Positions 10,299 through 34,403 of a stretch of DNA of 64,000 nt are shown in pieces. The DNA lies in the NCBI RefSeq assembly GCF_964194025.1, contig NC_134481.1, positions 46,004,001-46,068,000 of the forward strand. Reading direction: 5' to 3'. The notes under the pieces were generated by a model. That model was not told the origin of the DNA and did not search any database. It saw only the letters and a program-made list of their open reading frames with translations. This DNA is from Convolutriloba macropyga (taxonomy: Eukaryota). A program made the translations under genes and the position numbers. Positions within the stretch are counted from its first letter, which is position 1. Every line of letters begins with the position of its first letter.

Positions 10299-10338
10299 TA
10301 TGTTGACAACTTTCAATGTTTCAACTGGTTGGTTTACT

Positions 10339-11349: not shown

Positions 11350-11514
11350 GGATCTTTTCCGTTTCTGCCCCCCCAGTACGTTATGCTCCCCCCAGTGACA
11401 GAGCACGTGTCATTACATAATAAATCATTATGTAAAAATATTGCACGTGCGTCTGGGGGTTGCAAATAATATGCACCCACTAAGCTGGGGGGGGGGCACA
11501 AACGGAAAAGATCC
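11350..11514. mobile_element. GGATC-family MITE
   Basis: TIR GGATCTTTTCCGTTT / AAACGGAAAAGATCC; 8-bp TSD GGGAAAAT. Confidence 0.85.
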
Positions 11515-11634
11515 GGGAAAATATCTAGATTTTCTAATTCGGAGCGTCAAACGGCTTGGTTGAGTACAATCTTGGCCATTTCTGAGATATTTCAATTTCA
11601 ACTTTTCGAGAAAGGCAGAATTTTTGGCGAAGCA

Positions 11635-11709
11635 ATGTTTTGTATTGTTTGTGGCAAAGACAACGCGAAAGCCTGCGGAGGCTGTAAAACGTCCCACTAC
11701 TGCTCTAAG
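11635..11709 (+). CDS. MYND-finger protein copy 1, exon 1 (MFCIVCGKDNAKACGGCKTSHYCSK)
   Basis: CxxC-x7-CxxC-x4-YCS, the first part of a MYND finger; phase-0 donor AAG|GTCAGA. Confidence 0.85.
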
Positions 11710-12227
11710 GTCAGAATTTTTCAAGATAGCAGGAATTTCGACTGCGGACTTTTGTTTCTGGGTTAAGTTGATGAAAGCGTTTTCTTGATAGAGCTTAGCA
11801 AGTTACTTAAACGATAAATTGAATGTTAAATCCTAGTTTGAATGGTTGGCGTTTTGAAAAAAGCATTCTTCAATTGTTATCCTAACGTTTTCGAAACATG
11901 TTTGCATGTTGGGGGGGGGGGGGGGGGGGTTATAGCAGGCACAACTACTGTAAATGGACCAGTACTGCATTTGAACCAGGGTTTCACTGGCAAGCCTAAC
12001 GTTCAAACCAGTACACTAACTGGTCGTAAGCTCTCGAACTTAGGCATATCTTATAACCCGTTTTCTTGTTCCTCGAGGCTTCAACTCTCTAGCCAAGTGT
12101 ACATTGAACAACTAGAGCGTCTTGTCAAGCTTAATTTATACCCAATTTTCAATAGGTTGTTTCCTCTACTTTGTAAAAGTTACCCCTGCTATACCACATT
12201 TGTGTATACATTTTTTGCTTTGTCAAG

Positions 12228-14006
12228 GCATGTCAAAAGAAAGACTGGAAGCTACACAAATTAGTTTGAATTCCCCAAGTGAAACCGGAGCATCCGGACT
12301 ACCGAAGTTGCGACCCAGTCGTTGAACGTTCACCAGCTTCGCGACTTAAGAAACGAGGCGAAGTCTCAGAAACTTTGATAAATAAATGGTTCCGAAGTAA
12401 CGAAATTATTCCTGATTTTGCTGCCGAGTACAGAAAAGTATACCCGAATGATGTCGATCATTTCATACGTCTAACGGCTGAGCGGATTTCCATTGTTGAA
12501 ACTCTCGGAGTGCTCGAGAGAGGATACGAAGCATTCTCGGACGAAGATTTTTTGCCGGATCTACTTGCAATGCGCTGGAAAACATCGGATCCGCAAAGTT
12601 TGAAAGCGTTCCTAGGACGAAAAAAATTGAAAGACGGCGACATTTTTGACTGCAACGTAGTACCATACTTGAGTGACTGTGCAGGCAATAATGACGTCAT
12701 GGTCAATTACCAGCAGGTCTTCAGAAACACTCCAAGTGTTCCTTTAGGGTATGAATTTGGAAAGACCTACGTGGGGATCGGGTTCGTCGACTTGAGCCAG
12801 CTGCTCTGGGGAGAATACCAGAATGAAGGAGGAACCCTGCGTTTCTATGGTTACGACCAGGCGGAGGTGACAGTTGGGAGGAGTGTGTTGATGTATGAGA
12901 TGATGAAGGCAGAAGAGAGAGAAGTGAGTGAGAAGACGATTCTGCAGGTCTGGTTCTCATCCTGTTGGGACAGAGAGACACAAGAACAGTTCTTCTCATT
13001 TCTGGACAAACATGTACCCAAAATAAACAACCATCTCCTGTCTAAATACGCCCCCATTTGGAAAGCGAAGAAGGGAATGACTGCCAAACAGGCTCAGCAT
13101 GCTTTTCAGGAAAAGATAAGATCTGTGGACTTCGTGACCTTAAGCAACCTGAGAAAGAAGCAAGATCGCGTTGCATACGCTCGCTTCTTGTTTACAGGAT
13201 ACGTCTCATGGGAAGGTCTCGAAGCATTAGACGATTTAGAGGCAGTTTGTGCAAATGTTACTATGTTCCCGGGGCATGACGAAGATTGGTGTAAAGCAAA
13301 GTTTGAAAATTTTTATGCAACTATTGACATGACTAAATTGTCCCCAATGATTCGGGCGTCTGACAGTTCGATCATATCCTTTCTGCTCGGAGCAACTATG
13401 GAAAGATTTAACAGGTTGAGAAACTGGGTTCAAGAAGAGAAAGTTGTTTGCGAGCTTCAGCTTAAAAGTGTCAAGCTAGATGATGCCAAATTTGCCCAAA
13501 TGATCGGACAGCTGAATCCATATTTGATTGACTGGAGCAATATTCCGGACTACTTGCCAAGGTTAGATTTCATTGACTATGCTATGAAATGTAGTGGACC
13601 TGATACAGTGCATAACTTTCACACGATGAACTGGGTTTATTATGTGTTTGGTTCTGTTTATTTGGACTTCATGGGACGACGTGAACTCCTGGAATCAATC
13701 TATCAATCCTACCGTTCTGCTTTACAAGCACGCGCAAAAGCACGAGAGTGGTGCATACCGCATTTTTGCCGACTTGTTCGTCATCCAGCTTTGTCTCTAC
13801 CTTCTAATGAGTTCACGACCATGTCTATTGGGAAATATGGCGACAAATACTTGCGACATTTCTTAACGGACAGAAACGGGAAAGTCGCGAACCACGTGAA
13901 GTCTGTCGAATTGCAACCTCATCAAGTGTTTGCAAATTGCTCGTCTACAATTTTCTGCGCGTTCTCATTCGATGATGAAATTGTTTTCTGCAACTACCGA
14001 ATGTAA
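12228..14006 (+). CDS. MYND-finger protein copy 1, exon 2; in-frame TGA at 12267-12269 (possible pseudogene or recoded codon)
   Basis: Acceptor TGTCAAG; reads ACQKKDWKLHKLV*IPQVKPEH... then an intact ORF paralogous to copies 2 and 3; AATAAA at ~14260. Confidence 0.8.
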
Positions 14007-14344
14007 ATCTTGATCTGAATTTGGATGACTTCAGTAAAGTACAAACTGAGATCTGGAGAGATTTTGCTTGAGCGCCTTGATGACTCATTAAATTCTCTGG
14101 TTCTGAGACTTCTTCAATTTGTTTTTGCTTTTCATTTAGATATGATATTTCGACTATTGATGTTTTTGATGCTGTGTTATTTATGATTTTTGATATTGAG
14201 GTATTAAATGAATTCTGGAAACTTGAAACTTTGTTTGCCCAATGCAGCTTGTGTATTCGAATAAACACATTTTAAATGGGCTTTATCGGCATTCATTTTG
14301 AATTACTTCCTAATTTGATTAGTTACTTCTGGTTTTTGAGCGCG

Positions 14345-16379
14345 TAAAATGTGAATCACGTATTGTGGTCGGCGTTCGTTTCTACGGCCCAAAAGAGAGG
14401 AATGTTGGTTTTATACAGGTTTATTGCAAACCAAAGGTGAGTATTGGTTTTCCATAGGATTTTACAACTCGAAGGGAGTATTCGTGAAGCGTCCTTTTTG
14501 ATCAATAATGTTGATGGGAGTAAGTGTATTTGAAACAGGAAAAAATTTTGCGGAGGGAATTAAATTTTTGATTACGTGCGGTTTTTTAAAGCAGTTTTTA
14601 TTAGTTTTAACTTTTCATCCAAAGTGGTTTTTTCTCAATTGTTTTGAACAGTTTATATACGTTTGGGATCATTCTTGAACATCTGTTACACCAAATGTTA
14701 GACTTTTAGAAGCAGTTTTGAGGTTTTTTGAAACCAATTTGCCGGTTTAGGCGATTTTATTGCAGGTTTTTGTATCATTCTTCAAATTTACATAGGATTT
14801 GGGGTGGTTTGGTTTAAGTTTTTTTTCAAATGGATTGAGTTATTTTTTATTTGATTGATAATAATTTTGAGCTGTTCTTGTTAAAGAAGGTTAAGTCAAA
14901 TTGTCCTAATTTTGTTGCTATTCTTTCCTGTTAATTTTGTTGCTATTTTTTTAAGTTGAAGCATAGCTGTCGATGACTTGAGCATTGAGTTTTCTTCGTA
15001 CGTTGATTTGTTGTCTAACGTTGGGCATTAATGTTGAAAATATTTGATATATTTCTGATGATCAGTTGAGACTACCACTGGTAAGTAATGTTCAAGGTCG
15101 GAAGGTCATATTATGAGAAGTCATGATCTCAAAACAGTCCCTCTTCTCTATATCCAAACTATTCCCCATATCTAGACCTCCCCCTAAGCCGCCGGCGCCA
15201 CCCAACTACCCATCCCACCTACCCTCCAACTACCTCGCCGCCTAAAAATTTTGTCTCAATTTTCAGAAAGACTTTCTTCAGTTTTACTTGGCAATTATTT
15301 TTCACTTTTGTTATTTTTTTCTGATTTATGTAAGGTTAGAATAGTGTTCATATTGTTTTCGATAAAATGTGAATCACGTATTGTGGTCGGCGTTCGTTTC
15401 TACGGCCCAAAAGAGAGGAATGCTGGTTTTATACAGGTTTATTGCAAACCAAAGGTGAGTATTGGTTTTCCATAGGATTTTACAACTCGAAGGGAGTATT
15501 CGTGAAGCGTCCTTTTTGATCAATAATGTTGATGGGAGTAAGTGTATTTGAAACAGGAAAAAATTTTGCGGAGGGAATTAAATTTTTGATTACGTGCGGT
15601 TTTTAAAGCAGTTTTTATTAGTTTTAACTTTTCATCCAAAGTGGTTTTTTCTCAATTGTTTTGAACAGTTTATATACGTTTGGGATCATTCTTGAACATC
15701 TGTTACACCAAATGTTAGACTTTTAGAAGCAGTTTTGAGGTTTTTTGAAACCAATTTGCCGGTTTAGGCGATTTTATTGCACGTTTTTGTATCATTCTTC
15801 AAATTTACATAGGATTTGGGGTGGTTTGGTTTAAGTTTTTTTTCAACTGGATTGAGTTATTTTTTATTCGATTGATAATAATTTTGAGCTGTTCTTGTTA
15901 AAGAAGGTTAAGTCAAATTGTCCTAATTTTGTTGCTATTCTTTCCTGTTAATTTTGTTGCTATTTTTTTAAGTTGAAGCATAGCTGTCGATGACTTGAGC
16001 ATTGAGTTTTCTTCGTACGTTGATTTGTTGTCTAACGTTGGGCATTAATGTTGAAAATATTTGATATTTTTCTGATGATCAGTTGAGACTACCACTGGTA
16101 AGTAATGTTCAAGGTCGGAAGGTCATATTATGAGAAGTCATGATCTCAAAACAGTCCCTCTTCTCTATATCCAAACTATTCCCCATATCTAGACCTCCCC
16201 CTAAGCCGCCGGCGCCACCCAACTACCCATCCCACCTACCCTCCAACTACCTCCCCGCCTAAAAATTTTGTCTCAATTTTCAGAAAGACTTTCTTCAGTT
16301 TTACTTGGCAATTATTTTTCACTTTTGTTATTTTTTTCTGATTTATGTAAGGTTAGAATAGTGTTCATATTGCTTTCGA
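14345..16379 (+). repeat. Tandem duplication of a ~1017-bp unit derived from HINE family A
   Basis: 14345-15362 and 15363-16379 differ at about ten positions; the unit is similar to 41430-41570 (aatttgaattgtattgg..., ttac.actcgaag.g.gtatt); degenerate family-A 3' end near 16395-16430. Confidence 0.85.
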
Positions 16380-17981
16380 TATTTTATTCTTCGAGCTGTT
16401 TCTGGTCTTCTAGCGGGTATGTTTTTTCTGCTACACTTCATGGCAGAAAAACCTAGTGTTAAAATGAGTAATTTTTCTGTTCGCAGTGCTTCTACTGCGT
16501 TTAACAAGCAACTTATACTTGCAGATTAACCGCCATTAGTTTTTTTTACAACATAACGTAGACTTTGTTCTACTATTGGTATGAGATTTGTGTTTGTACA
16601 AAGGGAAACACAATTATAAAATGTTTAAAACGCTTAATTCGCGTTTTTTTTATGTGAAAATTTATTACGATTTTATCTTGTGCTGCATTTAGCACTTTAA
16701 ATCGATGTTTCAATGGGCTGGCAAAATGTTTAAAAATTAATGGAGAAACCTTGAATTTTACATTGTTTTTTATTCATCTGATCAGTTCGGTTACCTGTTT
16801 GAAATAGTGGTCTGGCTGTATTATATCCTCAGTTCACTTTGTTCTTCAAAGTTCTCATCATTTCTTATAGGATAAATCCTATAGTGCCTAATTAGGAGAT
16901 TTTAAGTGATTTAAAAATATGCGTATTTTGTAGCCAATTAGACTTTAAACTTACCATATAATTGGGGTGTCGAGAATGTGATTTGTTTTCACGAGAAATA
17001 TAGGTTTATTTGGAATGTTATGATCGGCTTGTTTGTATAAGCAATTTAAATCAATGGAGTTTTGATCTGCTTTAATTAAGAAAGAAAATCATGTCCGAAA
17101 GAATGCTCATTATTTGTGTTAGTTGTTTTTGGTTCAATATATCTGATTCATTTTTTTCGTCCCGATCTGACGTCACTCTGAAATCAGTTTTTGGTAATTT
17201 TTTCGGGTAATGTTTGACAGTGATGTGCGTAGGGTTTTTTCAACTCCTACGGTCTTAATTCTATGTTACGAGCTTGAATAGTTTCTTAGAATCGCAGATC
17301 GAAACTACCTGTCTACATCGCAAATATCGTCTGGTAATCTTCAATCTATGTTTCCACTTGAAATATGTTAGATTCAACATAGAAATTTTATGGAGTTTTA
17401 AAGAACTTAAAGATAAAGTGATTTTGTGAAATGGTTCATCCCTAGCTTCAATATTTTGATGAAATTTTTTACGATGAGTTTTTAGATTGTCTAGATTTGT
17501 GATAAAATTATACATTTTGATGCGATTGTTTTCTATTGTTATGGAGAGATTAAATGTAATATGGCATTTGGTGCATGAAAAATGTTTATTTTTAGTATAC
17601 TGGTCAAAAGCAGATATGAACTGCTGTGAATTTAGACCAGTTAAGAAACAAATGGAAAAGTTTTTGTTTTTGCAGCTTTTTTTAAAATTATTATTCTGCG
17701 AGTTTCTTGCCATAAATGCCACATGCATGAACAATCCAAAGTCCTTTTTTATATCACCCGACTCATAATAAGCAGAATTGTGCCTTTCTTTGATTGCGTC
17801 TCTGAAAATGGACCAATGCACTTAACTCTATGAATGGCTGGCGTTGTTCAAATTTCAAAGTTTTATTAGTTCATGGTAAAGAATGCTACACCATACTCCT
17901 TCGCAAAATCAGACATTAAAATCACTCTTTTAAAGAACTGCTTGTTCTCACGGTAACAATAAGCTCAGCAATCTTTTCTAG

Positions 17982-18341
17982 TTGCTCTCGAACGAAGTTT
18001 GAGGCAATTATTGTAAACGTTTTAGTATTTCATGCAAAAATTTTTGCTTGACCGTTTTCGCTCTAAAACATTTTGTTTTCACAAGTTACTTTGTCACGCT
18101 TCACATCTTAATTTTTGAGTGATCTCAATTGCTCTCAGTGTTTGGAGCTTACATAAAAGCGATTGTGAGCGGTAAGAGATCAAAGCCATTCTTGCTGAGT
18201 AGTTATGATGTTACACTGCTATCCTCGAGGTCACGGGTTCGAACCCCTGAGGTCGGACTTTTGCACCCATAAAAATTTCCCTCCTGCCCCCACCCCATGC
18301 TTGTTCGAGAGAAATTCTTCCGACGTTATAGGGTTATGATT
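17982..18341 (+). mobile_element. HINE-like family C copy with internal tRNA-like segment
   Basis: 5' subTIR TTGCTCTCGAAC in a stem-loop; 3' subTIR GTTCGAGAGAAA at 18303; B-box GGTTCGAACCC at 18236-18246. Confidence 0.7.
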
Positions 18342-18559
18342 TTTATTGACTCAATTTTCTAGAAGTTTAATTTCTGCAAAATCCACGAAACTGGTTTCTA
18401 TCCTAAGCAACGAAAACGAGTCAGCTCTTCTTTATAATTAGAAGCTTGATGTTGGTACCTTTTGAAATATCTATATTTGATTATATAGTTCTCAAATTTT
18501 CAGTACGTTTGTTAAGCTGATGTCTGGATAATTAACTCAGTTCAATTTCACCCTTAGCC

Positions 18560-18836
18560 GGGGGCATTTCAGATGGACGACACCAAAATTCTGTATTAAA
18601 TGAACGACAAAAATTAATACACGCAAAATCTCAATATACGCTGATAATTTATTACTAGTTGACGTGCCAGTTGTAATAGATTGGGGCGCGCTCACACGTT
18701 AGGTTGTGATAGATTCTTATCAAGTCCCACGGGCCGCTGAGGAATGGACACATGCGGAAAATGTATTTCTCCTTTTTTTTCGTTTAAACTAGTCATTATG
18801 GATGCTTTGCAGTGTCGTCCATTTGAAACGTTGTCC
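18560..18836. mobile_element. MITE-like element
   Basis: Inverted repeats TTTCAGATGGACGACAC (18567-18583) / GTGTCGTCCATTTGAAA (18812-18828). Confidence 0.6.
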
Positions 18837-19313
18837 TGTTGATCCCCCATTGCCATTATACCCAACTTGCCATTTTACCCAACGTCGTTCTAACCAATGC
18901 TAACTTTACGCAATTGTTAAAATTACCAGAACGACAATTAAATTTTCCGAAGGACTTGATGTGAAACTATCTTTACCAAACATGAGATTAAAATTTCCGT
19001 TTAACTATGTTAAAACATGCTGGTAAAAGCGATCGCTAATCTGTAATAACGTAATTGAACAAAAAGATATGATGGAATTGGATAAATTGTCATGTAAGCT
19101 GTGTGGCTAAATTTGGAAAATGATATCGTTAAAAAGGATTATTTAACATGCTACACTTTTCAGAGCTGCTCAAGAATAATTGAACTGTTTTTAGTTTTCG
19201 GTTAGTAGGTGGTCCGGTTTCATAGATATTGTAGCCATTAAATCTCGAGTGATTGTGATGAGATAAAACGATATCATGATCGGGTTGGAAAATTTTGATC
19301 AGACGACCTTTCG

Positions 19314-19613
19314 AACGACCTTTCAAACGACCTTACAGTCCATAATGTAAAATGGCGAGTTGTACGGTTCAAAAAACGACCTTTCAAACGACCTTACAGT
19401 CCATAATGTAAAATGGCGAGTTGTACGGTTCAAAAAACGACCTTTCAAACGACCTTACAGTCCATAATGTAAAATGGCGAGTTGTACGGTTCAAAAAACG
19501 ACCTTTCAAACGACCTTACAGTCCATAATGTAAAATGGCGAGTTGTACGGTTCAAAAAATGACCTTTCAAACGACCTTACAGTCCATAATGTAAAATGGC
19601 GAGTTGTACGGTT
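19314..19613. repeat. 61-bp minisatellite, about 5 copies
   Basis: Near-perfect copies of AACGACCTTTCAAACGACCTTACAGTCCATAATGTAAAATGGCGAGTTGTACGGTTCAAAA with no spacers. Confidence 0.95.
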
Positions 19614-20409
19614 GCTTTTGTTATTGCGTACAATTCAGGAACTTGTTATCTATTAAACAAATGAAACGTGAGATAACAAATTGCTACTTTTGAATAATTG
19701 TTATTTTTTGTTATTTTATTTTTGTGCGCTTGTTTTCTTAAATCGAACTTGAAGGATTGGAGATCTTAGATATTGAATTTATTCGTTTAAACTAAACTGC
19801 AGTTTAACATGTAAAACGGTGATTTTAAACGTTCTGTTTTTGCTAACGAATGTCGAAAAATTTATTGCTTTAATATGGCCACTTCGTTTTGAGGTGATCC
19901 TTTGCGGGCTTATTAAGACTTTGCTGCCATCATGTTCTCAGACAATAAAAGTTTCCTTTTGACTTTTCACTCAACCAAATTTCATACTGGTGTTTCAAGC
20001 ATAAACGTTTTGTTTCTGGTATAAGTTTACTTTTTGGAGCTTCCATTTATGCTCTCTGAACTTTCTGTCAATTGAGATCTGCTCTGATTGGTTAGTTATG
20101 CATGACGTCATTGTTGTTGTTATTGGCGCCGTCTCTCAGAACAACAATTTTAGTCCCTCGACGTCTGCTTAGCTGTAGGCTTCAAACTATTTCTCAGAAA
20201 TTGAAAGAATTGTTTATCGCAAATATCGTCCTAACGTTATATAGCAAAAATTTGTACATTTGTGCATAATTTCAGCATATCTTATCCACTGAGCATAATA
20301 ACGTGCTCTCGTTTTACCACCAGAAGAGTTTTTTTATTGTGTGAAGCAATTAATAACTTTTGTTATACTGCTGTTTTTGTTATACTGTGGTGTGCGTTTT
20401 AACGAGTTA

Positions 20410-20487
20410 ATGGCTGTTTGTCGAGTGTGTTCTAAACAAGATGCTAAGGCATGTACGGGTTGCAGATCGGTCCATTATTGCTCTAAG
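20410..20487 (+). CDS. MYND-finger protein copy 2, exon 1 (MAVCRVCSKQDAKACTGCRSVHYCSK)
   Basis: Homologous to the copy 1 first exon; same phase-0 donor position AAG|GTTCGT; too short for the ORF track. Confidence 0.85.
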
Positions 20488-20780
20488 GTTCGTTGATATA
20501 ATCCAACTTTCTTTTCTTGAGTAAATATTTCAACTGAGAAATTTGGGTTCAGAGGAAGCTAACGTTAACGATAGGGAAAATGCTTAAACTTATGAAACTT
20601 ATGATTGTTGAAAGATACCATTTTTTAACAAATTTTGTTGATGGTTGTTTTCTGATTTCGGTGCACTGCTTTCTATACTTGAGAAATGAAGGAAATGAAA
20701 TATGAAAAATAAGGTTTGAATTTTACCTTCATGATTGAGAAGCAAATACAGCAAATAATTTGAAACTGAAAAGCTGATCA

Positions 20781-23589
20781 TTTTTGTTCCGACCCCACTT
20801 GTGGGGGGAGGAACTATATACTCACATGGGTTTTTTTTGTTTAGTCAATTTTTGCCGATCGATATATTCATCGTAGAGAATTGTGAGTGGTATCATTAAA
20901 AAGCTCGTCCAGCGTCGAATTCAAAATTAAAAAGATTTTTTTTAATTTCCTTTTTTTCGAGGAGTTATCGAGGATTGAAGTTTTGTGTGAACATGTGATA
21001 TTTTGTTCACTTTTAGTGTAATTTATGTGTAATTTTAATTCTTCAAATTTAGATAATTTTTAAATAAAAGCTTGATTCAAAATTACATTTCAAGCCACAA
21101 AAAGATTCAATATAGAGTTCCTAATAGACGAAAGGCGATAAAAAAGACTTTTTCTGGTCTCATAGGGAAGTTCACTATCAAAAAAAATTATCGAATTCTA
21201 TTTGAGAGCTTTTTTTTTGAAAAAAAAATCATTTTTATTCGTTTTCTTGTGTCAGATAGAGACTAGTCACTTTTCATTCCAAGGTTCCGTTAATGATAAA
21301 TCTGATTCACAGTCTAATGACGCCCAATGAATAAAAAATTCGTTTTTAAAGAATCGCTCGTATATTTTTTTTGGCTACGACTCTGAATTTTAAATGAAAT
21401 TTTGATTTTTTTTGAGGTTTAACTGAATTTTTGGAGTCCTATGGCATAAACTCGTTGCCTAAAAGTGCAGTAGGTTTCATGATGAGCATTAAGAGAACCT
21501 ATCTAGAGCTTTGAGTGGACAGGAGAAAATTTTTATCATTAACCATCATAAACTTTTCGTGAATTGTAGGTCAACTTCAGTAATGACACAACCACCTTAC
21601 TTTCTACTGCAACCAAAATTAATCTGGTTAGCGGTTTTATTTTGTTATTATTTGTTATCTGACTTCAATGATACAAAATTTCGAAACTTAAAAAAAATTC
21701 GGATTTTTTCGTTTTATTGGTCCCTCTTGAAATCTTAACAAATTCTCCTGATATTAATATCTCCCATTGGCTTTGAGAATTTTTTCAATGGATCTTGGAC
21801 AGAGTTTTCAGAGAAAAATTTATGGTTTAAATGGCTTCGACACTTTCTTCGCGCACTTTCCCACAATTTTTTTCTTTTCGCCGGTATTTGATGTTGTTTC
21901 CATTGTCATAAGACTTATTGTGATGTCTTATCGATTACATATGCATGAAAATTACCGTTTTTTGTCCAATCGACGCACAACTGAGCGTATTTATTGCCTT
22001 CCGTTGAAAGCTATTGGATTTAATGATGATTAAACTTTAAAAAAGGTTTTCCGAGAAATTTTTAACATTAAACAATCTTAGCCCTTAGTTCGTGAACTGT
22101 AAGTCAGTCTCAGTAATGACCGGACCTTTTTTTGTTATTCAACCAAAATAATATAGTCAGCGGTTTTATGTTCTAACTATTCGTGTTATGACTTCGATGC
22201 ACAAGTTTTCATAACTTTTTTAAAAATTTTTGATCTCTTTTTCTTAATTCTGGTTCCTTTTGGAATCTTAACACATTACCCTAATAATGATAGTTTCATG
22301 GGCTTGGAGATTACAACGTTTAATGGATCATACAAAAAGTTTTCAGAGAAAAGCTGATGGTTTAAAGGGCTTTTTAAAGGGAAAAATTTTAACTGAAAAG
22401 TTCATTTTTTAATGGCCTCGACACTTTCCTCGCTCATTATTTTTTTTAATTTGCTGCTATGTTAGCCTGTTTTTTATTCTTTAGGTAGCCGTTAAAGCTG
22501 ACCGGTCTCATAAGTTTTTAAGTGAGGATTGATTGAATAATGTTACCCGAAGGAGACTGTTTATAGCCATTAGTCTTCAAGTTTTTAATATTATACATTT
22601 TTGAGATTTTAAGGAATTTTTATTTTTTTTAGTTTTTGTTGTTGTTTTTATTTACTGGTAACGTGTTCTCATCATTGAGAGGTCCCATGTATTTTAAAAA
22701 TTCACAGGTTTACTGATATTATGAGGTAGCTAATGATTTGTTTGTTGGAGCATGTGTTTTCATAAAAAGTTATGTGAGTGGTGTATTTGTGATTCTTTTT
22801 CTCTTCCTTTAGCACAATCGCGTAATAACAGATCCCAATGATTTTCAAATGTGGCCGAATTAAACTTATTTATTCATTCATTATATATTTAGCTGAACTG
22901 AATTAGTATAAATGGAAATTGAAATAAAAATACATAATATTCAGATAATAGCTAATGATTTTAATGGCTTCACTGATTTGTGTTTTCGCATTGTTTTTAA
23001 TTTTTCTGCATCTATAGTCGGTTCCTATGGCTTAGTCTAACCAAACACAGGTGCTATTGGTTTCATTATGACTCTTTTGAAAATTTATTGAGAATTATTT
23101 CGTTGAAAGCTATTGATTTTTGAGACTTAAAATTTTTCGGTTTAAAAAATGTGGATTGATTTTTGAATTTCGCCTAATTTTTTTTTGTAGAAATGTTACC
23201 TAGTCTCTTTAAGATAAAATCCTGCCTGCTGTGTAGTTAGGAAAATTAAATTCATGTAGTTAGGTTTTTGTCTAATTATAATGTGACGTTGTTACTAGGT
23301 GCTTTTGAAATTAGTTATTGCATTTTTGACGTGAAACTTATTTATCTGCTTTTTTGTAGTTGTTGTTTTTTTCTCGTAGTCTTTTCAATGCAGATATCGT
23401 TGTAATGAGGCATGGCATCATTTAATTCAATTATGAGTTTGGTTGTGTAACGGTTTTTTTGAACTCAAACATCTACTTTTGATTATCGCGTTGTCAAAAA
23501 TGTAAGTCAAAAGACAGTTAATTCAAAAATGTAGATCAGCGCGGGTCGGAACATCATGTGCGAACGCACATCAACGAGGCGCCTTGTTA
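20781..23589 (+). mobile_element. HINE/Helentron-like family B element filling the copy 2 intron
   Basis: 5' subTIR TGTTCCGACCC with adjacent partial inverted copy (GGAAC); 3' subTIR GGGTCGGAACA (23543-23553) followed by hairpins ATGTGCG-aa-CGCACAT and AACGAGG-cg-CCTTGTT; internal ~530-bp duplication (21560/22092). Confidence 0.7.
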
Positions 23590-23939
23590 TAATATCTATT
23601 TAAAAGTTTTTAGCTATCTTTGCTCAATTAATTTCAGCATATTTTCCATAATTCTTGTGATAAGGGTACGTGCTAGCGGTTAACAAATTGTGGCAACAAA
23701 TATCTTTCATGAGCATGCTTAAACAATCTAATGCTTTGTTTTTTTGATAATATTTTCCATCGCTTGATATTAGGTAAAACTATAGATTACAATCTTTATA
23801 TACCATTATAAACGCGCAAAATGTCAATAGCACAAACCGTTCATAATTTATCGTTGGAGGATATCCACCTGTGATGACAGTAAAAAATATTCTAAAATCG
23901 GGCTAGTTTGAGCAGTTGAGTGTGATGTCTTGTAATTAG

Positions 23940-25733
23940 GAGTGTCAAAAACGGGACTGGAATGAACACAAAAAGTCTTGTAACAAAACAACTCAAGTTG
24001 TGAAACCTAAGAACGAAGCGGCTAAACCCTCTGCTAAGAATAGCCCAAATGACATCGTGAAAGTACCCAAAAGACTGAATCCTTCTGATTATCTCATCAT
24101 CATGGAGCGAAACAAGTCCATGATAACTGATTACGCCATGGAGTACAGGAAAAGGTTCCCGAATGAATTTAACCGGGTTGCAACTTTGGCAATGGAGCGT
24201 ATGCAGACGCTTGTAACAATGGCCTCCATTGAGGAGGGTTTTGAGGCGTTTGCTGACGAGGACTTTGCTCCCGAAAGGTTTATGCAGCGTTGGAACACTT
24301 CAGACATTGAAGGTCTTACGGCATTTCTTAAGAGACCTGATTTGAAAGATGGTGATATCTGGAGCTACGATACGTTGCCTTACTTGACTAGCAACCTTGT
24401 TCAGTCGAGAAGTCAACAAATTGTGAGGAACACAATTAACCATCAGCAAATATTACGTAACACTCCTTGTCCTCAATTAATTTTCGATTTTGGAAAGACC
24501 TACGTGGGAATCGGATATGTAGATCTGTGTCAACTGCTCTGGGGCGAATACCAAAATGAAGGTGGAGGAACCCTGCGTTTCTATGGTTACGACCAGGCAG
24601 AAGTGACAGTTGGGAGGAGTGTGTTGATGTATGAGATGATGAAGGCAGAAGAGAGAGAAGTGAGTGAGAAGACGATTCTGCAGGTCTGGTTCTCATCCTG
24701 TTGGGACAGAGAGACACAAGAACAGTTCTTCTCATTTCTGGACAAACATGTACCCAAAATAAACAACCATCTCCTGTCTAAATACGCCCCCATTTGGAAA
24801 GCGAAGAAGGGAATGACTGCCAGACAGGCTCAGGATGCATTCACAAAACATCGCAGGTCCTGTGATTTTATGCCCATCAATAATCTCTTGGCTGTAGACG
24901 ATCAAATTCATTTTGCAAATTACCTATTCACTGGAGCTTTGTTCATGGACAAAAACCGCCCTATTGATTCTCTATGTGCGAATGTAACTATGTTTCCTGG
25001 TTCTTCGGAAGATTGGATTAAAGTTAAGTTCGAAGACTTCTTCAATACAATTGATATGAACACTCTATGTCAACAATTTGGACCATCGAGCAGATCGGTG
25101 ATTGAATTGATTTTGAAATCGACAGAGAGCAAGTTGAAAAAACTGAGGAGTTTTGTAAGAGAAGGCAAAATGCTTTGCAAGTTAAATGTCAAACAGGTCG
25201 CGACCGACGATTCTAAGTTTGCGAAAGAAGTTAGGAGCTTAGATCCTTATTTTATAGACTGGAGCAACATTCCGGACTATTATTCGAGGCTGGACTTCAT
25301 CGAATTGGCGCGAAAATGCAGCGGTCCAGACACTCTCCATCATTTTCATACCATGAACTGGGTCTACAAAGTTTTCGGAGCTTCGTTCTACGATTTCGTC
25401 GATCGCCGTGAGGTGATTGAAAGCATTTACAAGAAGCACAAGAAAGTTATGGAACCGGTAAACCAGATGTTACGAATGACGTCGCCTGATTTAACAAGAT
25501 TGGTCCGAGTTCCAAAGCTGAACCTCCCTGTCAATGAGTTCTCAGCTTTGGCAGTTCAAATTCATGGCGAAAAGTATCTCAAGCATATTATGACTGATAA
25601 AAAGGGGAAAGTCTTGAACTTTGTCAAAACTCCATTCAATCACTACTGGCAAATATTTGGAGACAATGACACGCTTATGATATGTGCCTTCTCTTTTAAC
25701 GATGAGTTGGAGTTGGGTCTGAAATATGTTTAA
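23940..25733 (+). CDS. MYND-finger protein copy 2, exon 2; spliced protein 623 aa
   Basis: Acceptor TAATTAG; ECQKRDWNEHKKSC completes the finger; long ORF with YVGIGYVDL, QVWFSSCW, IDWSNIPDY, HTMNW; AATAAA at ~26010. Confidence 0.9.
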   Translation, partial: ECQKRDWNEHKKSCNKTTQVVKPKNEAAKPSAKNSPNDIVKVPKRLNPSDYLIIMERNKSMITDYAMEYRKRFPNEFNRVATLAMERMQTLVTMASIEEGFEAFADEDFAPERFMQRWNTSDIEGLTAFLKRPDLKDGDIWSYDTLPYLTSNLVQSRSQQIVRNTINHQQILRNTPCPQLIFDFGKTYVGIGYVDLCQLLWGEYQNEGGGTLRFYGYDQAEVTVGRSVLMYEMMKAEEREVSEKTILQVWFSSCWDRETQEQFFSFLDKHVPKINNHLLSKYAPIWKAKKGMTARQAQDAFTKHRRSCDFMPINNLLAVDDQIHFANYLFTGALFMDKNRPIDSLCANVTMFPGSSEDWIKVKFEDFFNTIDMNTLCQQFGPSSRSVIELILKSTESKLKKLRSFVREGKMLCKLNVKQVATDDSKFAKEVRSLDPYFIDWSNIPDYYSRLDFIELARKCSGPDTLHHFHTMNWVYKVFGASFYDFVDRREVIESIYKKHKKVMEPVNQMLRMTSPDLTRLVRVPKLNLPVNEFSALAVQIHGEKYLKHIMTDKKGKVLNFVKTPFNHYWQIFGDNDTLMICAFSFNDELELGLKYV

Positions 25734-26043
25734 TTCACCTGAAAGATCAATCAGCAGACTGAACTGGACATTAAGTTATGGCGAACTACTCTTATAGACT
25801 CTCAAAGACCTTGTTGTTTTACCTGATTTATATTGCTGTTTATTTCCTTTCAGATCATGTATAGCGAGCTCCTGGTTTCTTCAGTTCACTATCAATTTTT
25901 AGGCATTTTGTATTGGTGAAATTGCAGTATCAGTTGATAGAACAGGAACTGATTGAGATTTTGGTATTTCTTTTCATGCTTTCCTCGTTTTATTCAAGCT
26001 CTATTGAACAATAAAGCCTCAAACGCCGTCGTGATATTATTAA

Positions 26044-26437
26044 TTGCTCCTGAACAAGTTCAGCAATTATTGTAAACGTGTGTCTTCTTTTTATACAAAA
26101 TTTTCGCTTGACCGTTTTGACTTTTCGAGTAACTTTTACGCCCTTTGACTTTTTGCGTTTCGCGTGATCTAAAATTCTCTCTCAATCACAATTTCAAGCA
26201 GCTGAACTCAATTGGCGGCAAAGGTCAAATGGAAAGTGCGTCCAAACTGGTGCCGTTTTTAACTTTAAATCTGAATAGTGGTATATGTTAACCTGTAATG
26301 TGCTTATTTGAAGCCCAATATTGAACTTCTTAGTCTCGTTTAGACTCCCTCTCCCCCCGACTGAAGCAGGCTGCAGTTGATTAGAGCTCCCACTAGTGCT
26401 CCCACCAGAGCAACTCCGACGATTAGTCGGTTATGTT
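26044..26437 (+). mobile_element. HINE-like family C copy
   Basis: 5' TTGCTCCTGAAC-aa-GTTCAGCAATT; 3' AGAGCAA then hairpin CCGAC-gatta-GTCGG then TTATGTT. Confidence 0.65.
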
Positions 26438-28099
26438 AAACGTTGATTTTGAGGTACGCCATGTACTAGCTGGAATACAGACTGATGAATATCGGTCGGA
26501 ACGTGCGAGTTAACATTAAAAGCTTTTTTAATCTCTTAAGAATTTTTTAGAGTAAGAGCCAATCAAGATAATCAAAGTAGTTTGAATTCTAATTTAAAAA
26601 CTTTCCTCCCTTACAGAATTTGTTTTTCATAAAATACTGTGCTCTTAGCATGTGGGTATTTTGTTTTGCTGTGTTGACTTTACTATAATGGAAACTGACA
26701 TGACATGGAGTTAGCTAATTTATCGGACGATAAAATTGGCTGCCGACAAAAGTGGCCTGATAGTATGTAAAAACTGAAGGCGCAATAATTATAACATTTT
26801 TGAAAATGACCATTTAATTTTTTTTTACCGAAAATGAATTCTGCATGGATCCTATTCAAAGCCTTATTTGCCGCCCAGTCTTAGGATCCGTGGCCATTTC
26901 TGATAGTTTCTTGCGTTGGTGATATTAAATATTAGTTTTCTTAACAAATTTTTGGTTGATAAAGTTTCTAAGAAAAGCAATTGTGCCGTTTGTCATCTAA
27001 ATTTTGTAATCGTTTTAATTTGCCTTCTGCTTGGGCTTCAAAATCAATCAGCTTTGATTGTACTTATCGTCAGATAGACAATAAAGGTTTAGCAAGATAG
27101 TCGGAGATTAAAAGATAATTGTTTTTGGTCAAAATAAAACTAGGAGGATTGATAATGTGGAATATTTGCAGCACTTAAATGGGCATTATATTCCTGCCGC
27201 CGGTCCTTTTCAAAGGAGCAGAGACTTCAAACTTCATTCAATAAATAATTCATTAATGAGCCTAATGCCGTGGATATAATGACGCAGAACATTCGCTTTC
27301 TTGCCTAAATTTCAAAAAAGGCAGTCAACACTGAAGTTGTGGAAGTGAAGAAAATCAGGGGAAAAATGCCGATTTTCTCCTGAAAACTGAAGTGAGATGT
27401 TGTGATTACACTGGATCAAAAGCAAAAATACATTTTTTTAAAACAGTTAAATACAGTTTAAAACTGAGCTAAATGGATGTCTCCGAACGAGGGTTTCAAA
27501 ATAGTTTCACGAAATTTGAATAAGATCCCGAAACTGCTTTATTGACTAAGGTTGTTTTAGGTGCTAAGCATTACAGCAAAAAATCGAAACTGCATCCAGT
27601 TTAATTAATTTGAATCTTAAAACGAAATAAATTGAGAAAAAAAAATAACGACGAATAAGGAAAAATTAATTTTTTCATTACATTTTAAATTCAAGAAGTT
27701 ATATCAAAAATGCATTATCTGGCTAGCAGAGCGCTCAATTTGCTGAAAAAGGAAAATGTTAATGCAAGTTTCTGACTCTCTGTCGGAAACGTTGTGATCA
27801 TTAGAAATTTTGTTACTTAGATTCACCAAAAATCAACGTACCCTTAACGAATTTTCAAAAAGTGCCTTGAATATCTGAAACATTTTGAATTCAAATCAGG
27901 TCTCAAGTTAGAATGCATTATGCCTGCAGTTTTTTTGACAATTAGTAGAGGGTTCGTATAGTTGTCACAAATTTTGCTAATGAAGTCTGCAATAATTTCG
28001 TTGCAAAATTCTGACACCTAATTTTTCTGAAAAACTCTCTTTTTAGCCTTTAATTTTTCAGTTACTTTAAAATCTGGATTAAAGATGAACCATTCCAGT

Positions 28100-28299
28100 N
28101 NNNNNNNNNNNNNNNNNNNNNNNNNNNNNNNNNNNNNNNNNNNNNNNNNNNNNNNNNNNNNNNNNNNNNNNNNNNNNNNNNNNNNNNNNNNNNNNNNNNN
28201 NNNNNNNNNNNNNNNNNNNNNNNNNNNNNNNNNNNNNNNNNNNNNNNNNNNNNNNNNNNNNNNNNNNNNNNNNNNNNNNNNNNNNNNNNNNNNNNNNNN
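28100..28299. other. Assembly gap (200 N)
   Basis: Run of N. Confidence 1.
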
Positions 28300-31200
28300 C
28301 CTGTCGGTTAATGGGAACGCAGAGACAAATCTTGTAATCGAATAGTTAAATTAGAAATAATGGTTGACAACTGTGGCGATTGACACGAAATTCAGTCCAT
28401 ATTTATTACCCCAAATTACCGCACTTTTACATTCATGGTGATCACCTTTAATTTATCACTTCCTTGACTTCTTATGACATCCGATCTTAACTAGCTATTT
28501 ACTCTGATAATTTACTTCTCTAAAAGATCAAGGGTCATCATATCACACATAACAATATGAAAAGTTGGGGACAAATCCAGTATAAATAGCACGTGTTAGC
28601 TCCTTGTTGCATTCACTCATTTCATAAATAACCAAGATGTAAATCAGCACGTGGATGAGGTACGTATATCTTTCCATACTTTAAACAATTAACATTATAC
28701 TTTCAACAAAATGTATACGCTTAAGATGTATGTTTTTGTTCCATGGATTTACGTATCTATTTTCATTTCTGTTTGCAACTTCACCTCTGACTGCTTCATC
28801 GATCATAACAGAATGTCTTTTCTGTAACATTTCCGTTACTTGTCTCAATCTTGCTATTCGTAAAAACCTGGTAGTGAATATGGCTATCCATGGTCTACCT
28901 TTTATCCTTCTAAACATTTGTATCTAATTTTTTCGAATACTTCTGCTAAAAGATATTGCCTTATTTAGAGTACTTTTATGTATATTTACCTACCCTTGTG
29001 AAATCGTTCGGTGCTATATTAAACGAATAGCATGTCATGTGTCTTCTTTTTAATGTTTGAGTTTCTTGACTTAAACATGATATTTGTGTAAACCTGGAAG
29101 CGAATGTTTATCCAGGGTCTAGGTTTTGAAATTTCCTTCTAAACATTAATGTTTTGGAATACCTCTGCTAAAAGGTTATTGTCTTATTCAAAGTATTTTA
29201 ATGTATGCTTTCTTAATCTGGTGAAATTTTTCGCTGCTATTTTATAAGCATCTTCTGATATGTATTCTTGTTTAAGATTTCAATGGAATGCTCCAATTGG
29301 AGTTAATTTTTTCCTTGGTCCTTTTACCAATTATCCTCTTTGCTTTCCTATATTCTTTTTGACAGCGGTGCTGCGTTCTAAATTGTCTTGTTTTATGTAT
29401 TGGTGACAAACAACATCATAGTAAGTGAGTGGACCTAAGAATCTAAGTATGTCATTTTTTAAACAAACTTCTGAAAAGATTTCCGTAGTTCCTGTTACTG
29501 TTTTATTTTGTTTCAGCTAGTTAATGAATAGGTTGAAGTCATAATTTTACCCATTTTAGACGTATAATAGTGCAAATGTTGGTTTCTTTGCGTTCAAATT
29601 TCGTTTAGTATGCTAATAACCTCTAATATTTACTATTGAGATGAGATTGATGTCTTATATATTTAGTGTTTATTGGTTTGTTACAGTAAATACCTAACAT
29701 AATAACTCAACTTCCCCTTTAATCGCTAAGTTTAATGAAAATTATTCGCTTTGTTGAAATGAAATTTCCGTTCCTGTTTCTGACCTCCTCATTTTTATGA
29801 TTCCGTTATGATTCCGTTTCCGCTTCATGGTTCTAACTTACATTCTCATGATTCCCTAATATTTGTTCTGAGGAGTATCTTAATAAGTAATGAAGACTGA
29901 TATGATTTGTTATGTGACCTTTAAAATAGTTAACATATTAGTGCAATATTCGAATTGACCTTAATCTGGCATTAAATTACTTAATCAGGCATTTGATTGA
30001 ATGTATTTGAGTGATTTTGATAGTGTTTCTATTTTTCATTTTTCAAAATGCTGAAATCTGTTTTGATCCTCTTAGATAGCTTTCATTTTTGTTGAGTGCA
30101 TGGGAAATTAGATTTAGGAAATAAAATCTTAACATCATCAAAATATTTTGGCTTTCTTTGTTTTTTTTTCAGGTTGTAGGGAACATGTAAGCTGACAACC
30201 TCTATATTAAACAAAAATTATCAATGTTTAATATAACCGGTTTCTACGTTTTTAAATAAAATATATAGAAATTTGAATTTTAGTTCTATAAGAGATCCAC
30301 GAACTGAGCTGTAGTTTGCAAGGTGAAGTGTTCTTGTTGGTCTTTTTCGAATCATCCTTTCACGTTCTCTCATCTTATTGCTCAGACAATTTACTTCTTG
30401 TTGACCAGCTTGACTGCAAACACTAGGTTTTGTTGGTTGTATCTGCATAGATAAAATCTGTTTCTTGTGTTGTACTTCTTCGGGAAAGGGAAAAGTTTTT
30501 TTTATAGGTTCGTTAAGTGTTAATTCAAATGTGTCAGCCTATTAATCTTCTTGTTTTAATTTGGTCCTTATTGATATTTTTGCGTTGTTAAAACTTGATA
30601 CTGTGATAGATATCGCTTAAGTTTGTTCATCTGAGTCATCTTTGAACTTGCTTTTGAATTATGAATTTTAGTTGTATAATGTTCTTTTTTTAAGACTTTG
30701 AGTTTTCCCAAAGTCTTGGTCTCAAGTATCACCATTGTTTTGCAATCTACCCTTTTTAAATTTTTATGATGTGCATATTAATCTTTATTATTAATAAGAA
30801 TTACTCTTCAACTCTCACTCAAATAAAAATTAGAACAACTCTTTTACCTAATCTTATCTTTAAGTGTAATTAATCTCTAACTTTAAGACTCTACTTAATC
30901 TTTCACTTTAAAAACAAGTTTCTCTTTACTTTAAAATAATTTGGTAAAAAGTAGCTACACAGTAAAGTTAATCTTAACTATTCTTTCTAGTTTATGGACT
31001 TTAAATTATTTTGTTGAATTAGAAAGAAAACTTAAAGTTACTCTCTAACTCATTGCAAAAGTAAAGTTCTTCGTTATAATTTGTCTGTGAAGCACACTGA
31101 TATATTAAATTTTTTTAATTTAGTTTTTAATGTATAATCTGTTACGCGTACATATAAAATAAATTTTATTAATCTAGAAGGCAATTTTTTTAATTCTCAT

Positions 31201-32594
31201 TTAAATTGTAGAAACGAAGATGTCCTAAATTGTTGAAACGAAGATGTCTTAAATAAAGTTAATCTTTTGCAAATAAGTATAATTAATCGTCATCTCTTAA
31301 GTTAATTGTGTAATTATTCGGTAATTATTTTACTCTCTTCATATAAATTATTTTGTTGAATTTCATTAAAGAAAATTTTATTTTATACTTATTATTCAGA
31401 TTATTTTCTTTAAATTTTTATAGCCTTCTTAGGTATTTTGAAAACGAAAGTTGAAAATCTTACACTATTTAGACCTTTTATTATTAAAAGGAAAATTGGA
31501 AATAAGCTATTGTTGACTTTTTTTAGTTGATGATCAGGAGTAATAGTGAGTAGAGGAATTGAGCAAAGCAAGCTGAGCTCGTTTCCTGTTTTTACAGCTA
31601 CTCCCAAAAAGTTTAACCTTGTTCGATTATTAAAAAGTTAATGTAAGGCCAGGACATTATTTCTTTGAATCTGATTAGTTCAGAAATATGGACAGGAATG
31701 CAACAGGAATAATTAATAGTTCTGCTCTCTCTCACTCGCTAATAGGAGCTATGAAAAGTGAAAAATTTCTACATGTCCAACTCGTGGAATACGTAAACTA
31801 GCAGCTGAAACTGCTGGAAATGATAGCAAAAGTTGAAGTTGTTCAGCGTTTTTCCGATTTTCGTGAATATGCTGTAACAGCTAGCTATCTCTGCGGGATA
31901 TTGAAGACAGCAACTATTGACAAGCAGTTTCTTCCTAAGAAACTATACAATAACTATTATAAAATTGTGGTTGAAATAGGAAATTGCCATTTTGAACATT
32001 TACGTTCAAATTTTTTGGAAACACATTTGAGCGTGCGTTATTGATATTCGAAGATTTTTTTTCCTTAGCGCAACAAATTGTTTACGTGACTTAAAACTTT
32101 GTTAAACAGCAAATTCATTTGTTACAATAAATGCGGAGTTGTTGTTGAGTAAATGTAGTCAAACAAAGAATTAATTTTAGTCATATAGAAGGAGAATCAA
32201 GAATAGCGACTTTGGAAACTAGCCAAATAATACAAAGGCGGTTGCAATCGTCGAATTTCTCTTATTGTTGGAGCAATAGATAAGAAAAAGCTGTCCTCAG
32301 TCTGACACGATTCTACAACAGCACACGTCTCAAGTTCCTCTTTGAAACTTATTTGTATTTCATTTTAAAAAAACTAGAGAAAATGTTTTTAATGAAACAG
32401 TCTTGTTGATCTAAACGAAAAATTGCCAGGAGAAGGAAATCGTGTATGTAAAAGTCCAAAAAGGTATAGCCGTTTTGATTTCAAAAATTAACAAGACAAA
32501 CTAATTCTCGTTTCTGTGCCATTTATTTTATTGGGGCTTCTAATTTCAAGTTTAATTATTGCTAGTCGAGGTCAAGTTTTATGGTTTTAAATAG

Positions 32595-34403
32595 GAGTGT
32601 CAGCGGAAAGACTGGAAAGAGCACAAGAAATTGTGTGGCAAAACTGTTTCCACACCTGTGAAAACAAAGGAACTCACACGTAAAGCTGCTACGAGTAATG
32701 CTGATAAAACCTCTCTCCCTAAAAAGGTGAAGAAATCCGACACGAGAGGCATTCTTGAGCGCAACCAATCGCTGATAGCCGATTACGCAACCGAGTACAA
32801 AAGTAAGTTCCCAAGAGAAAGAGGTCATGTTGAAAGATTGGCGGTAGAGCGCACACAAGCGCTGGTCCGCTTGGCTGCCATCGAAGAGGGTTTCGAAGCT
32901 TATACCGACGATGATTTTACTCCTGAATTTGGGGTTTTTATGAAGCGCTGGAACACAGTCGAGCTTGAAAGCTTGCAAGCGTTTCTGCGACGTCCCGACA
33001 AGAAAGATGGTGATATCTGGGATTTTGATTCAATGTCTTATTCATCTGCTTATATACTGGAGCAAGAATTCAAAGTAAATTATCAACAGATTTTGCGTAA
33101 CACTCCTTGTTCCGAAAAATTGTTTCATTTTGGAAGTAACTATATTGGCATTGGGTATGTGGATTTATGCCAACTGCTCTGGGGCGTATACCATAATGAA
33201 AGTGGAGGAACTCTGCGTTTCTATGGTTACGATCAGGCAGAAGTGACAGTTGGGAGGAGTGTGTTGATGTATGAGATGATGAAGGCAGAAGAGAGAGAAG
33301 TGAGTGAGAAGACGATTCTGCAGGTCTGGTTCTCATCCTGTTGGGACAGAGAGACACAAGAACAGTTCTTCTCATTTCTGGACAAACAGGTACCCAGAAT
33401 AAACAACCATCTCCTGTCTAAATATGCTCCCATTTGGAAAGCGAAGAAGGGAATGACTGTCAAACAGGCTCAGGATGCTTTTACTGCGCATTTGAGATCA
33501 TGCGATTTCATGCCCCTTAATAATCTACTTGTCGCGAACGATCGCATTATGTTTGCAAAATATTTGTTCACTGGTTGTGTTTTCGTTGACTTCAATCGAC
33601 CTGATGACGTTATATGTGGAAACGTTACTATGTTCCCGGGAGCCTCGGAGAGCTGGGTCAAAGTTAGACGCGAAGATTTCTTTAACACCGTTGATATGAG
33701 TGCGATTCTTCGTAGCTCTGGTTCGGAAAATAACGAGTGTAAATCTGTGATCTCAAAAATCCTGAATATAACTACATCTAAGCTGAAAATTTTCAGGTCT
33801 TTGGTACAGGACAAGAAAATTGTTTGTAAATTTGCTCTGAAAGAAGTTCGAACGGACGATTCGACATTTGCTAGAGATATGAAAAGGTTGGATCCCCATT
33901 TCATAGACTGGAGCAACATTCCGGACTATTATTCCAGGTTGGAATTCATTGAACTGGCACGAAAATGCAGTGGTCCGGATACCCAGCATAGTTTTCATAC
34001 AATGAATTGGGTCTGCAAAGTTTACGGTGCTTCGTTTTTCGATTTTATTGATCGACGCGAGTTGCTTGAAGACATGTACAGTCGTTTCAGACTGTCGGCT
34101 CGATTTTTAAGTCAATTCAGTCAAGCTATGTCATCGCAAAGTTTAGAGGGTCTAGTCAGGAGCCCCAAATTTGATCTCCCCCTCAATGAATTTTCATCTA
34201 TGGCAATTGAGCTACACGGAGACAATTATCTCAAGCATCTAATGACTGACAAAAAGGGGAAAGTTCTGAACTTCGTCAGAAATTCATTCAATCACTACTG
34301 GCAAATCTTTGGAGATAATGACACTGTGATGTCAGTAACATTCTCTTTTAATGATGAGATAATGTTGAGGTTGGCAGACTTTGCCAAGTTAAAGTTGTGG
34401 TGA
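32595..34403 (+). CDS. MYND-finger protein copy 3, exon 2 (first exon not found)
   Basis: Acceptor AAATAG; ECQRKDWKEHKKLC; intact ORF paralogous to copies 1 and 2. Confidence 0.88.
   Translation, partial: ECQRKDWKEHKKLCGKTVSTPVKTKELTRKAATSNADKTSLPKKVKKSDTRGILERNQSLIADYATEYKSKFPRERGHVERLAVERTQALVRLAAIEEGFEAYTDDDFTPEFGVFMKRWNTVELESLQAFLRRPDKKDGDIWDFDSMSYSSAYILEQEFKVNYQQILRNTPCSEKLFHFGSNYIGIGYVDLCQLLWGVYHNESGGTLRFYGYDQAEVTVGRSVLMYEMMKAEEREVSEKTILQVWFSSCWDRETQEQFFSFLDKQVPRINNHLLSKYAPIWKAKKGMTVKQAQDAFTAHLRSCDFMPLNNLLVANDRIMFAKYLFTGCVFVDFNRPDDVICGNVTMFPGASESWVKVRREDFFNTVDMSAILRSSGSENNECKSVISKILNITTSKLKIFRSLVQDKKIVCKFALKEVRTDDSTFARDMKRLDPHFIDWSNIPDYYSRLEFIELARKCSGPDTQHSFHTMNWVCKVYGASFFDFIDRRELLEDMYSRFRLSARFLSQFSQAMSSQSLEGLVRSPKFDLPLNEFSSMAIELHGDNYLKHLMTDKKGKVLNFVRNSFNHYWQIFGDNDTVMSVTFSFNDEIMLRLADFAKLKLW

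Follow-up and report, generated by a model that had tools for sequence, protein, structure and literature searches.

Where genes have been duplicated, purifying selection can keep part of the duplicated region similar and thereby sustain gene conversion there, and the rest escapes (PMC3924837). The mosaic pattern has been modelled for tandem paralogs (bioRxiv 10.1101/2025.10.29.685298). Here we analyze 64,000 nt of the genome of Convolutriloba macropyga (assembly GCF_964194025.1, contig NC_134481.1, forward-strand positions 46,004,001 to 46,068,000; hereafter the window), in which three paralogs, referred to as copies 1, 2, and 3, carry a nearly identical stretch in their second exon. We denote the 270 nt reported in the original prediction as the tract, and the extended stretch of ~300 nt as the block. 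Our favored explanation, with a probability of about 0.82, is that the locus holds three old tandem paralogs and a very recent duplicate of gene 1, and that the 300-bp block in exon 2 has been repeatedly overwritten by interlocus gene conversion.

A homogenized block between saturated flanks

The three tracts (12828-13097, 24564-24833, and 33204-33473) align without gaps, and 259 of their 270 columns are invariant. The original prediction had counted 3 nt of difference between copies 1 and 2 and 8 nt between copies 2 and 3; re-alignment returned the same numbers, together with 9 nt between copies 1 and 3. Inspected base by base, the block begins 30 nt before the reported start and stops exactly at the reported end, and identity climbs from ~50-65% to 97-100% within it alone. 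The block so defined lies on the forward strand at 12801-13097 in copy 1 (297 nt, one GGT codon being missing just 5′ of 12828 relative to copies 2 and 3), at 24534-24833 in copy 2 (300 nt, residues 179-278 of the exon-2 open reading frame, ORF), and at 33174-33473 in copy 3 (300 nt), which has diverged most (8-9 differences within the 270 nt of the tract). The 3′ edge is abrupt, with 22 of the next 40 positions mismatched between copies 1 and 2. When the three genes were aligned together with the adjoining 2.5 kb at either end, identity reached 92-100% only over 12803-13099, 24536-24835, and 33176-33475; elsewhere it was 40-70% inside the ORFs and ~30-45% outside them. Comparison of the genes also bore out the claim that the flanks in the same exon differ at many residues and by indels.

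The mismatches within the homogenized stretch are strongly clustered. The longest identical run is 220 nt between copies 1 and 2, 155 nt between copies 2 and 3, and 146 nt between copies 1 and 3. When mismatch positions were shuffled 10,000 times, the longest runs obtained were 29, 48, and 41 nt, respectively, so that none of the 10,000 shuffles in this GENECONV-style check was as extreme as the observation.

The contrast is equally sharp at synonymous sites. Nei-Gojobori estimates of synonymous divergence (dS) in the tract are 0.04 between copies 1 and 2, 0.08 between copies 2 and 3, and 0.12 between copies 1 and 3. In both flanks of the same exon, the proportion of synonymous differences (pS) is 0.72-0.90 and dS exceeds 2.5 or is undefined, with a nonsynonymous divergence (dN) of 0.24-0.58. 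Third-position identity between copies 1 and 2 is 0.98 in the tract vs 0.34 and 0.32 in the two flanks. The drop in dS is thus confined to the block, and low dS across the whole genes is rejected by the saturated flanks. Flank protein identity is 40-59% overall (44% between copies 1 and 2, 59% between copies 2 and 3), and homologues from other species show 42-49% flank identity to copies 1 and 2. For copy 1, these homologues (42-44%) score as well as copy 2 does. Copy 1 is therefore as distant from copy 2 in the flanks as the genes of other species are.

Block and flanks also support conflicting trees. In flank trees, copies 2 and 3 group with a paralog on another chromosome (C9a) to the exclusion of copy 1, the separation having 99-100% bootstrap support; in the block data, copy 1 is nearest to copy 2. 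With the block data, the approximately unbiased (AU) test rejects the flank topology (P = 0.0018); with the flank data, it rejects the block topology (P = 6e-93).

A search of the 1.18-Gb assembly found the tract in paralogs only: in copies 1-3, in a fourth copy (c0) located beyond the window, 31.4 kb upstream of copy 1 and 100% identical to it over the whole ORF, in C9a (tract 86% identical), in a paralog on contig C1135 (tract 72% identical), and in broken fragments. Divergence in the block is graded across these copies, with dS of 0.04-0.12 in the chromosome-15 cluster, 0.5 to C9a, and ~2 to C1135. The C9a flanks are saturated at synonymous sites, yet they are as near to copy 2 as the copy 3 flanks are. 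This gradation fits repeated exchange that ended earlier for copies no longer in the cluster. It also bears on the simpler possibility that a single recent patch was copied once into each gene, with no long-running process behind it. The mere three differences between copies 1 and 2, and the common edges, are what one donor segment would be expected to leave. Such an event does not readily account for the graded divergence (0.04 between copies 1 and 2, 0.08-0.12 for copy 3, 0.5 for C9a) or for the polymorphisms that are still common to the loci in two haplotypes (see below), and a one-off exchange between genes whose flanks are ~50% identical would be mechanistically unlikely without prior similarity of the island. 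We judge a single transfer improbable.

The high identity of the block is confined to this genome. Homologues from two other samples (P0005-P0008) give a block pS of 0.78-0.84, which is saturated, and within-genome paralogs are more alike in the block than cross-species homologues are, the comparison species being deeply diverged. Over residues 236-278, which form the 3′ half of the block, copies 1-3 are 91-98% identical and C9a is 88% identical, vs 35-53% between species; the between-species value is not above that of the flanks. Homogenization of this species-specific kind is what the original prediction had set out as the mark of conversion. Each of the other-species loci fetched (L020-L023) holds one family gene, and no block-specific homogenization was seen in same-sample homologue pairs of other species, so that there is no independent replicate. 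Over the 43 residues of the 3′ half, the identity of C1135 to copy 2 is 0.65, vs 0.35-0.53 between species, which is suggestive of C1135 being a former participant in the exchange. Third-position GC content (GC3) over the 90 codons of the tract is 0.53-0.59 in the converting copies, vs 0.41-0.47 in their flanks and 0.42-0.47 in nonconverting homologues. The increase (~0.1, not significant) is suggestive, being compatible with GC-biased conversion.

Assembly support and shared polymorphism

A nearly identical block in a repetitive region could be produced by polishing or collapse during assembly. We checked k-mers in Logan contigs from four DNA runs that represent three samples and two studies (2016 and 2024). 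The core of the block (24603-24784) forms its own unitig without differences, at depths of 144, 208, and 120, vs 24, 41, and 51-58 in the adjoining contigs specific to copy 2, and a contig starting at 24793 joins the copy 2-specific G at 24823 to the unique 3′ flank of copy 2. Depth and links are those expected of a k-mer graph when an identical core is truly present in several copies. The block also recurs in both genes of another haplotype in a separate, metagenome-type assembly. The ratio of core depth to that of the unique flanks is ~5-6 in the 2024 samples and ~2.2 in the 2016 sample, which suggests that the copy number of the cluster differs between individuals.

An artefact might still be suspected from a 30.7-kb duplication of 99.87% identity and an assembly gap in the region. 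The gap (28100-28299) falls after the copy 2 stop codon (25733) and before copy 3 exon 2 (32595), outside all ORFs and tracts; because of it, the spacing of 8640 nt between copies 2 and 3 is an estimate. Polishing and collapse are opposed by the agreement of the independent assembly, and by a core depth of 2-6 times that of the unique flanks, with correct links to those flanks, in three samples from two studies. Protein-level purifying selection acting alone might be proposed instead, as conservation in the protein family peaks in the 5′ half of the block, but such selection cannot keep synonymous dS at 0.04 beside saturated flanks. We consider an assembly artefact and protein-level selection alone to be effectively refuted.

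The second haplotype is available in a contig from ENA (L008) that covers the interval from copy 1 to copy 2 at 82-97% identity. Because the C9a locus is matched at 100% identity by a sister contig of that assembly, L008 represents another haplotype or individual of this species. The two genes on L008, designated hA and hB, are allelic to copies 1 and 2 (dS 0.01-0.11), and the dS of 0.04 between their tracts repeats the block pattern. The L008 contig stops ~340 nt before the gap at 28100 (~27763-28299), so that two assemblies break at the same place, which suggests that the surrounding region is hard to assemble.

Several variants in the block are shared between loci. At site 24545, A and C segregate at both the copy 1 and the copy 2 locus; at sites 24554 and 24602, the copy 2 locus segregates for the base of the copy 1 locus; the GGT codon missing from copy 1 is present in hA; and T at 24572 is common to hA and copy 3. 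Polymorphism shared between loci is the population-genetic hallmark of interlocus conversion (PMC3924837).

These observations also bear on a functional nucleic-acid element in the coding sequence (a small-RNA target, structured RNA, antisense transcript, enhancer, or splicing element), whose sequence purifying selection on the nucleotides would maintain, whether or not conversion had spread it. Such an element would go well with sharp edges common to all copies, with a 3′ half of the block that lacks strong protein-level constraint between species, and with allelic diversity that is lowest in the block. However, an Rfam search of 11000-36000 returned no match at E ≤ 1 on either strand, the block folds no better than dinucleotide shuffles (z = +0.54 sense, z = +0.89 antisense), and the tract is found nowhere in the genome outside the paralogs. 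Synonymous sites diverge in the more distant family members (dS of 0.5 for C9a and ~2 for C1135, saturation in other species), so that there is no family-wide nucleotide constraint; and constraint alone leaves both the shared polymorphisms and the tree incongruence unexplained. We regard an element of this kind, which the original prediction had offered beside gene conversion, as quite unlikely; nothing in the data, which are of DNA only, calls for a small-RNA target. The other proposal, that repeated and sharply bounded gene conversion homogenizes one module, is supported by dS, identical runs, tree conflict, the restriction of the tract to the paralogs, genome specificity, and independent data, and all the checks suggested in the original prediction that were run agree with it.

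The original prediction had also raised a recombination hotspot that shuffles paralog halves. One observation gives this a weak hint of support. Between the reference and L008, allelic divergence at the copy 2 locus (23589-26288) is ~9% up to ~24600 and then 0.3% for 1.65 kb, and the switch coincides with the 5′ edge of the block. This hints that the block is recombinationally active, although it is a single observation that a haplotype switch by the L008 assembler could mimic. In a further, independent sample from 2016 (X5), differences are likewise more numerous on the 5′ side of the block than on its 3′ side.

The genes and their neighborhood

The tracts lie in long forward-strand ORFs (12279-14006, 24000-25733, and 32631-34403). 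A canonical AG lies shortly before each ORF, and the in-frame sequence that follows it encodes (E/A)CQxxDWxxHKxxC, which is the second half of a MYND zinc finger. The indexed sequencing runs that we found were of DNA only, and the two-exon models were drawn from the genomic sequence. In copy 1, exon 1 (11635-11709, forward strand) would supply the ATG and the first half of the MYND finger and is followed by a GT donor at 11710; exon 2 (12228-14006) begins after an AG acceptor and encodes the second half of the finger and a DUF4470-like, methyltransferase-like body. Copy 2 is built in the same way, with exon 1 at 20410-20487 (ATG and first half of the finger, GT donor at 20488) and an intact exon 2 at 23940-25733 after an AG acceptor. 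Copy 3 has an intact exon 2 at 32595-34403, also after an AG acceptor; regular-expression, tblastn, and blastn-short searches of 25800-32650 returned no credible candidate for its exon 1, which may lie inside the assembly gap or be absent. Spliced, exons 1 and 2 yield a complete zf-MYND domain (PF01753; cut-off 22.7 bits) in copy 2 (46.5 bits) and in copy 1 (47.2 bits, with X at an in-frame TGA).

This TGA (12267-12269) replaces the last zinc-ligand Cys of the MYND finger and is also present in c0. The other haplotype (L008) carries TGC (Cys) at the same site, so the TGA of copy 1 is a segregating nonsense allele and not a fixed pseudogene. An allelic dN/dS of ~0.2 suggests that copy 1 was functional until recently. 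No Rfam match to an element resembling a selenocysteine insertion sequence (SECIS) was obtained over 11000-36000.

A search of Pfam with the three exon-2 ORFs returned no family, and the body of ~550 residues has no match of its own. Weak matches to DUF4470 (PF14737) were found in 10 of 21 homologues, the matched region ending in the 5′ half of the block; no family member reaches the gathering score of 25 (best 23.2 bits), and copies 1, 2, and 3 have no match. An AlphaFold2 model of copy 2 built with the 21 homologues has a predicted local distance difference test score (pLDDT) of 82 and a predicted template-modeling score (pTM) of 0.84. Compared with AlphaFold clusters named as DUF4470 or MYND-type proteins, it gives template-modeling (TM) scores of 0.74-0.78. 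Foldseek returned no match to the model in the PDB at E ≤ 0.001. Among the top 50 solved structures aligned to it by VIA-align, nearly all are class I S-adenosylmethionine (SAM) methyltransferases (Z = 8.8-10.9, 157-228 residues aligned), and profile searches of the ORFs gave no methyltransferase match at the sequence level. The gene body is accordingly modelled as a divergent DUF4470 domain with a predicted class I methyltransferase-like fold. In this model, the block (residues 179-278 of copy 2) encodes strand β2 (192-198) and five helices. It contains 9 of the 30 family-invariant columns (D198, L227, Q228, W230, F231, S232, W235, F243, and W266). The invariant Asp198 closes strand β2, the position at which methyltransferases bind the SAM ribose.

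The 30.7-kb segmental duplication is in tandem, with its distal copy occupying 1-16381 of the window and starting 14.3 kb before it. It contains the EPRS ORF, a tubulin gene, and copy 1 in the distal copy or c0 in the proximal one (G000:C15:45958310-45988974), and its distal end lies in a 1018-bp tandem repeat (14345-15364 and 15363-16381). Either the segment was duplicated very recently, or the assembly has falsely duplicated it. EPRS (bifunctional Glu-Pro tRNA synthetase; 1103-5758) encodes 1551 aa with three WHEP repeats in one uninterrupted, full-length ORF, which is unusual in a eukaryotic genome of 1.18 Gb; nucleotides 1-319 of the window are repeated exactly at 1315-1633, 1314 nt downstream, within this ORF. 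The tubulin gene is at 9189-10316. A tubulin gene also lies upstream of the family gene at the P0007 and P0008 loci, as it does for copy 1, and contigs of another species (L021:2154-3371 and L022:1612-2871) have an opposite-strand tubulin gene upstream of the MYND/DUF4470-like gene. The neighborhood is therefore old.

Intron 1 of copy 2 is full of very high-copy repeats (20594-23745), with k-mer depth up to ~2 million; the copy 1 intron has only ~520 nt. A minisatellite of ~61 nt (19314-19613) has many more copies in the other haplotype (L008:7231-9582). Farther downstream, the window contains a 449-aa ORF without a Pfam match (38808-40157) and a 153-nt tandem repeat in two copies that are 91% identical (42461-42766).

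Maintenance of the block and comparison with known systems

In our reading, the block is copied from paralog to paralog by non-reciprocal homologous repair. Its identity of 97-99%, which extends to synonymous sites, would exist because it has been repeatedly overwritten while the rest of the genes became saturated. Strong protein constraint on the 5′ half of the block may have kept DNA identity sufficient for heteroduplex formation, and every conversion would then renew identity over a defined patch. Unchecked divergence of the flanks, now at ~50% identity, would block heteroduplex extension, so that later events would end at the same sharp edges and the block would behave as a self-maintaining homology island, with its less constrained 3′ half probably carried along.

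Several points weigh against this reading. The conversion events are reconstructed from sequence comparison; the shared polymorphisms are few, coming from two haplotypes; and the concerted-evolution comparison is made with deeply diverged species. Furthermore, residues 150-178 are conserved and not homogenized, and residues 236-278 are homogenized and not conserved between species. The block is thus shifted 3′ of the strongest protein constraint, and for this reason a homology island accounts only partially for the edges. That three genes have the same two edges could also be due to selection, or to a sequence element by which the endpoints are set.

A further proposal is that more than chance homology keeps the block identical. 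Selection may favor the same helical sub-domain in all copies, for example a partner-binding or paralog-pairing surface beside the cofactor-site strand, with the N- and C-terminal parts diversifying, or the block may contain a break-prone site. We find this doubtful, though worth keeping in view. If the block did contain a break-prone site, it would be a conversion hotspot and the point at which haplotypes and paralog halves reshuffle; under either version, conversion would be a maintained, adaptive part of the modular architecture of the family.

Taken as recurrent interlocus conversion, the locus exemplifies a known process in an extreme and tidy form, and is not a new kind of element. As a natural example it is very clean, and it shows how far gene conversion can continue, here on a 300-bp island in genes that otherwise have 44% protein identity and saturated dS. 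A length of ~300 bp is near the minimum homology usually thought to be needed for recombination, and the locus could serve to calibrate models of divergence-limited conversion. It also carries a warning for annotation and phylogeny, in that trees or dS values computed from the block would misdate the paralogs by orders of magnitude. Finally, the analysis provides a first description of an uncharacterized animal gene family in which a MYND finger is followed by a body predicted to be DUF4470-like with a methyltransferase-like fold.

At the protein level, the family resembles MYND-finger/DUF4470 proteins (PF01753 and PF14737) in its full MYND finger and in the fold of its body, although the PF14737 match is below threshold here; the DUF4470 domain is also annotated in DNAAF3 (Pfam PF14737). 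With class I SAM methyltransferases it shares, in the model, a Rossmann-type fold and the invariant Asp at the end of strand β2. Unlike them, the family has large helical insertions and no sequence-level match.

At the level of process, two systems are closest. In paralogs from the yeast whole-genome duplication (PMC3924837), as here, purifying selection keeps part of the sequence similar enough for conversion, and the rest has long escaped. In yeast, however, the boundary separates coding from noncoding sequence, whereas here it cuts through one exon and is displaced from the strongest protein constraint. Arabidopsis halleri (bioRxiv 10.1101/2025.10.29.685298) has three HMA4 copies that are, like copies 1-3, tandem paralogs and form a mosaic of homogenized and diverged segments with polymorphisms common to the loci, and their effective conversion rate varies along the gene, as it does here. 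The HMA4 copies are young and similar overall, whereas copies 1-3 have saturated flanks with 40-59% protein identity and a single 300-bp island that is still exchanged.

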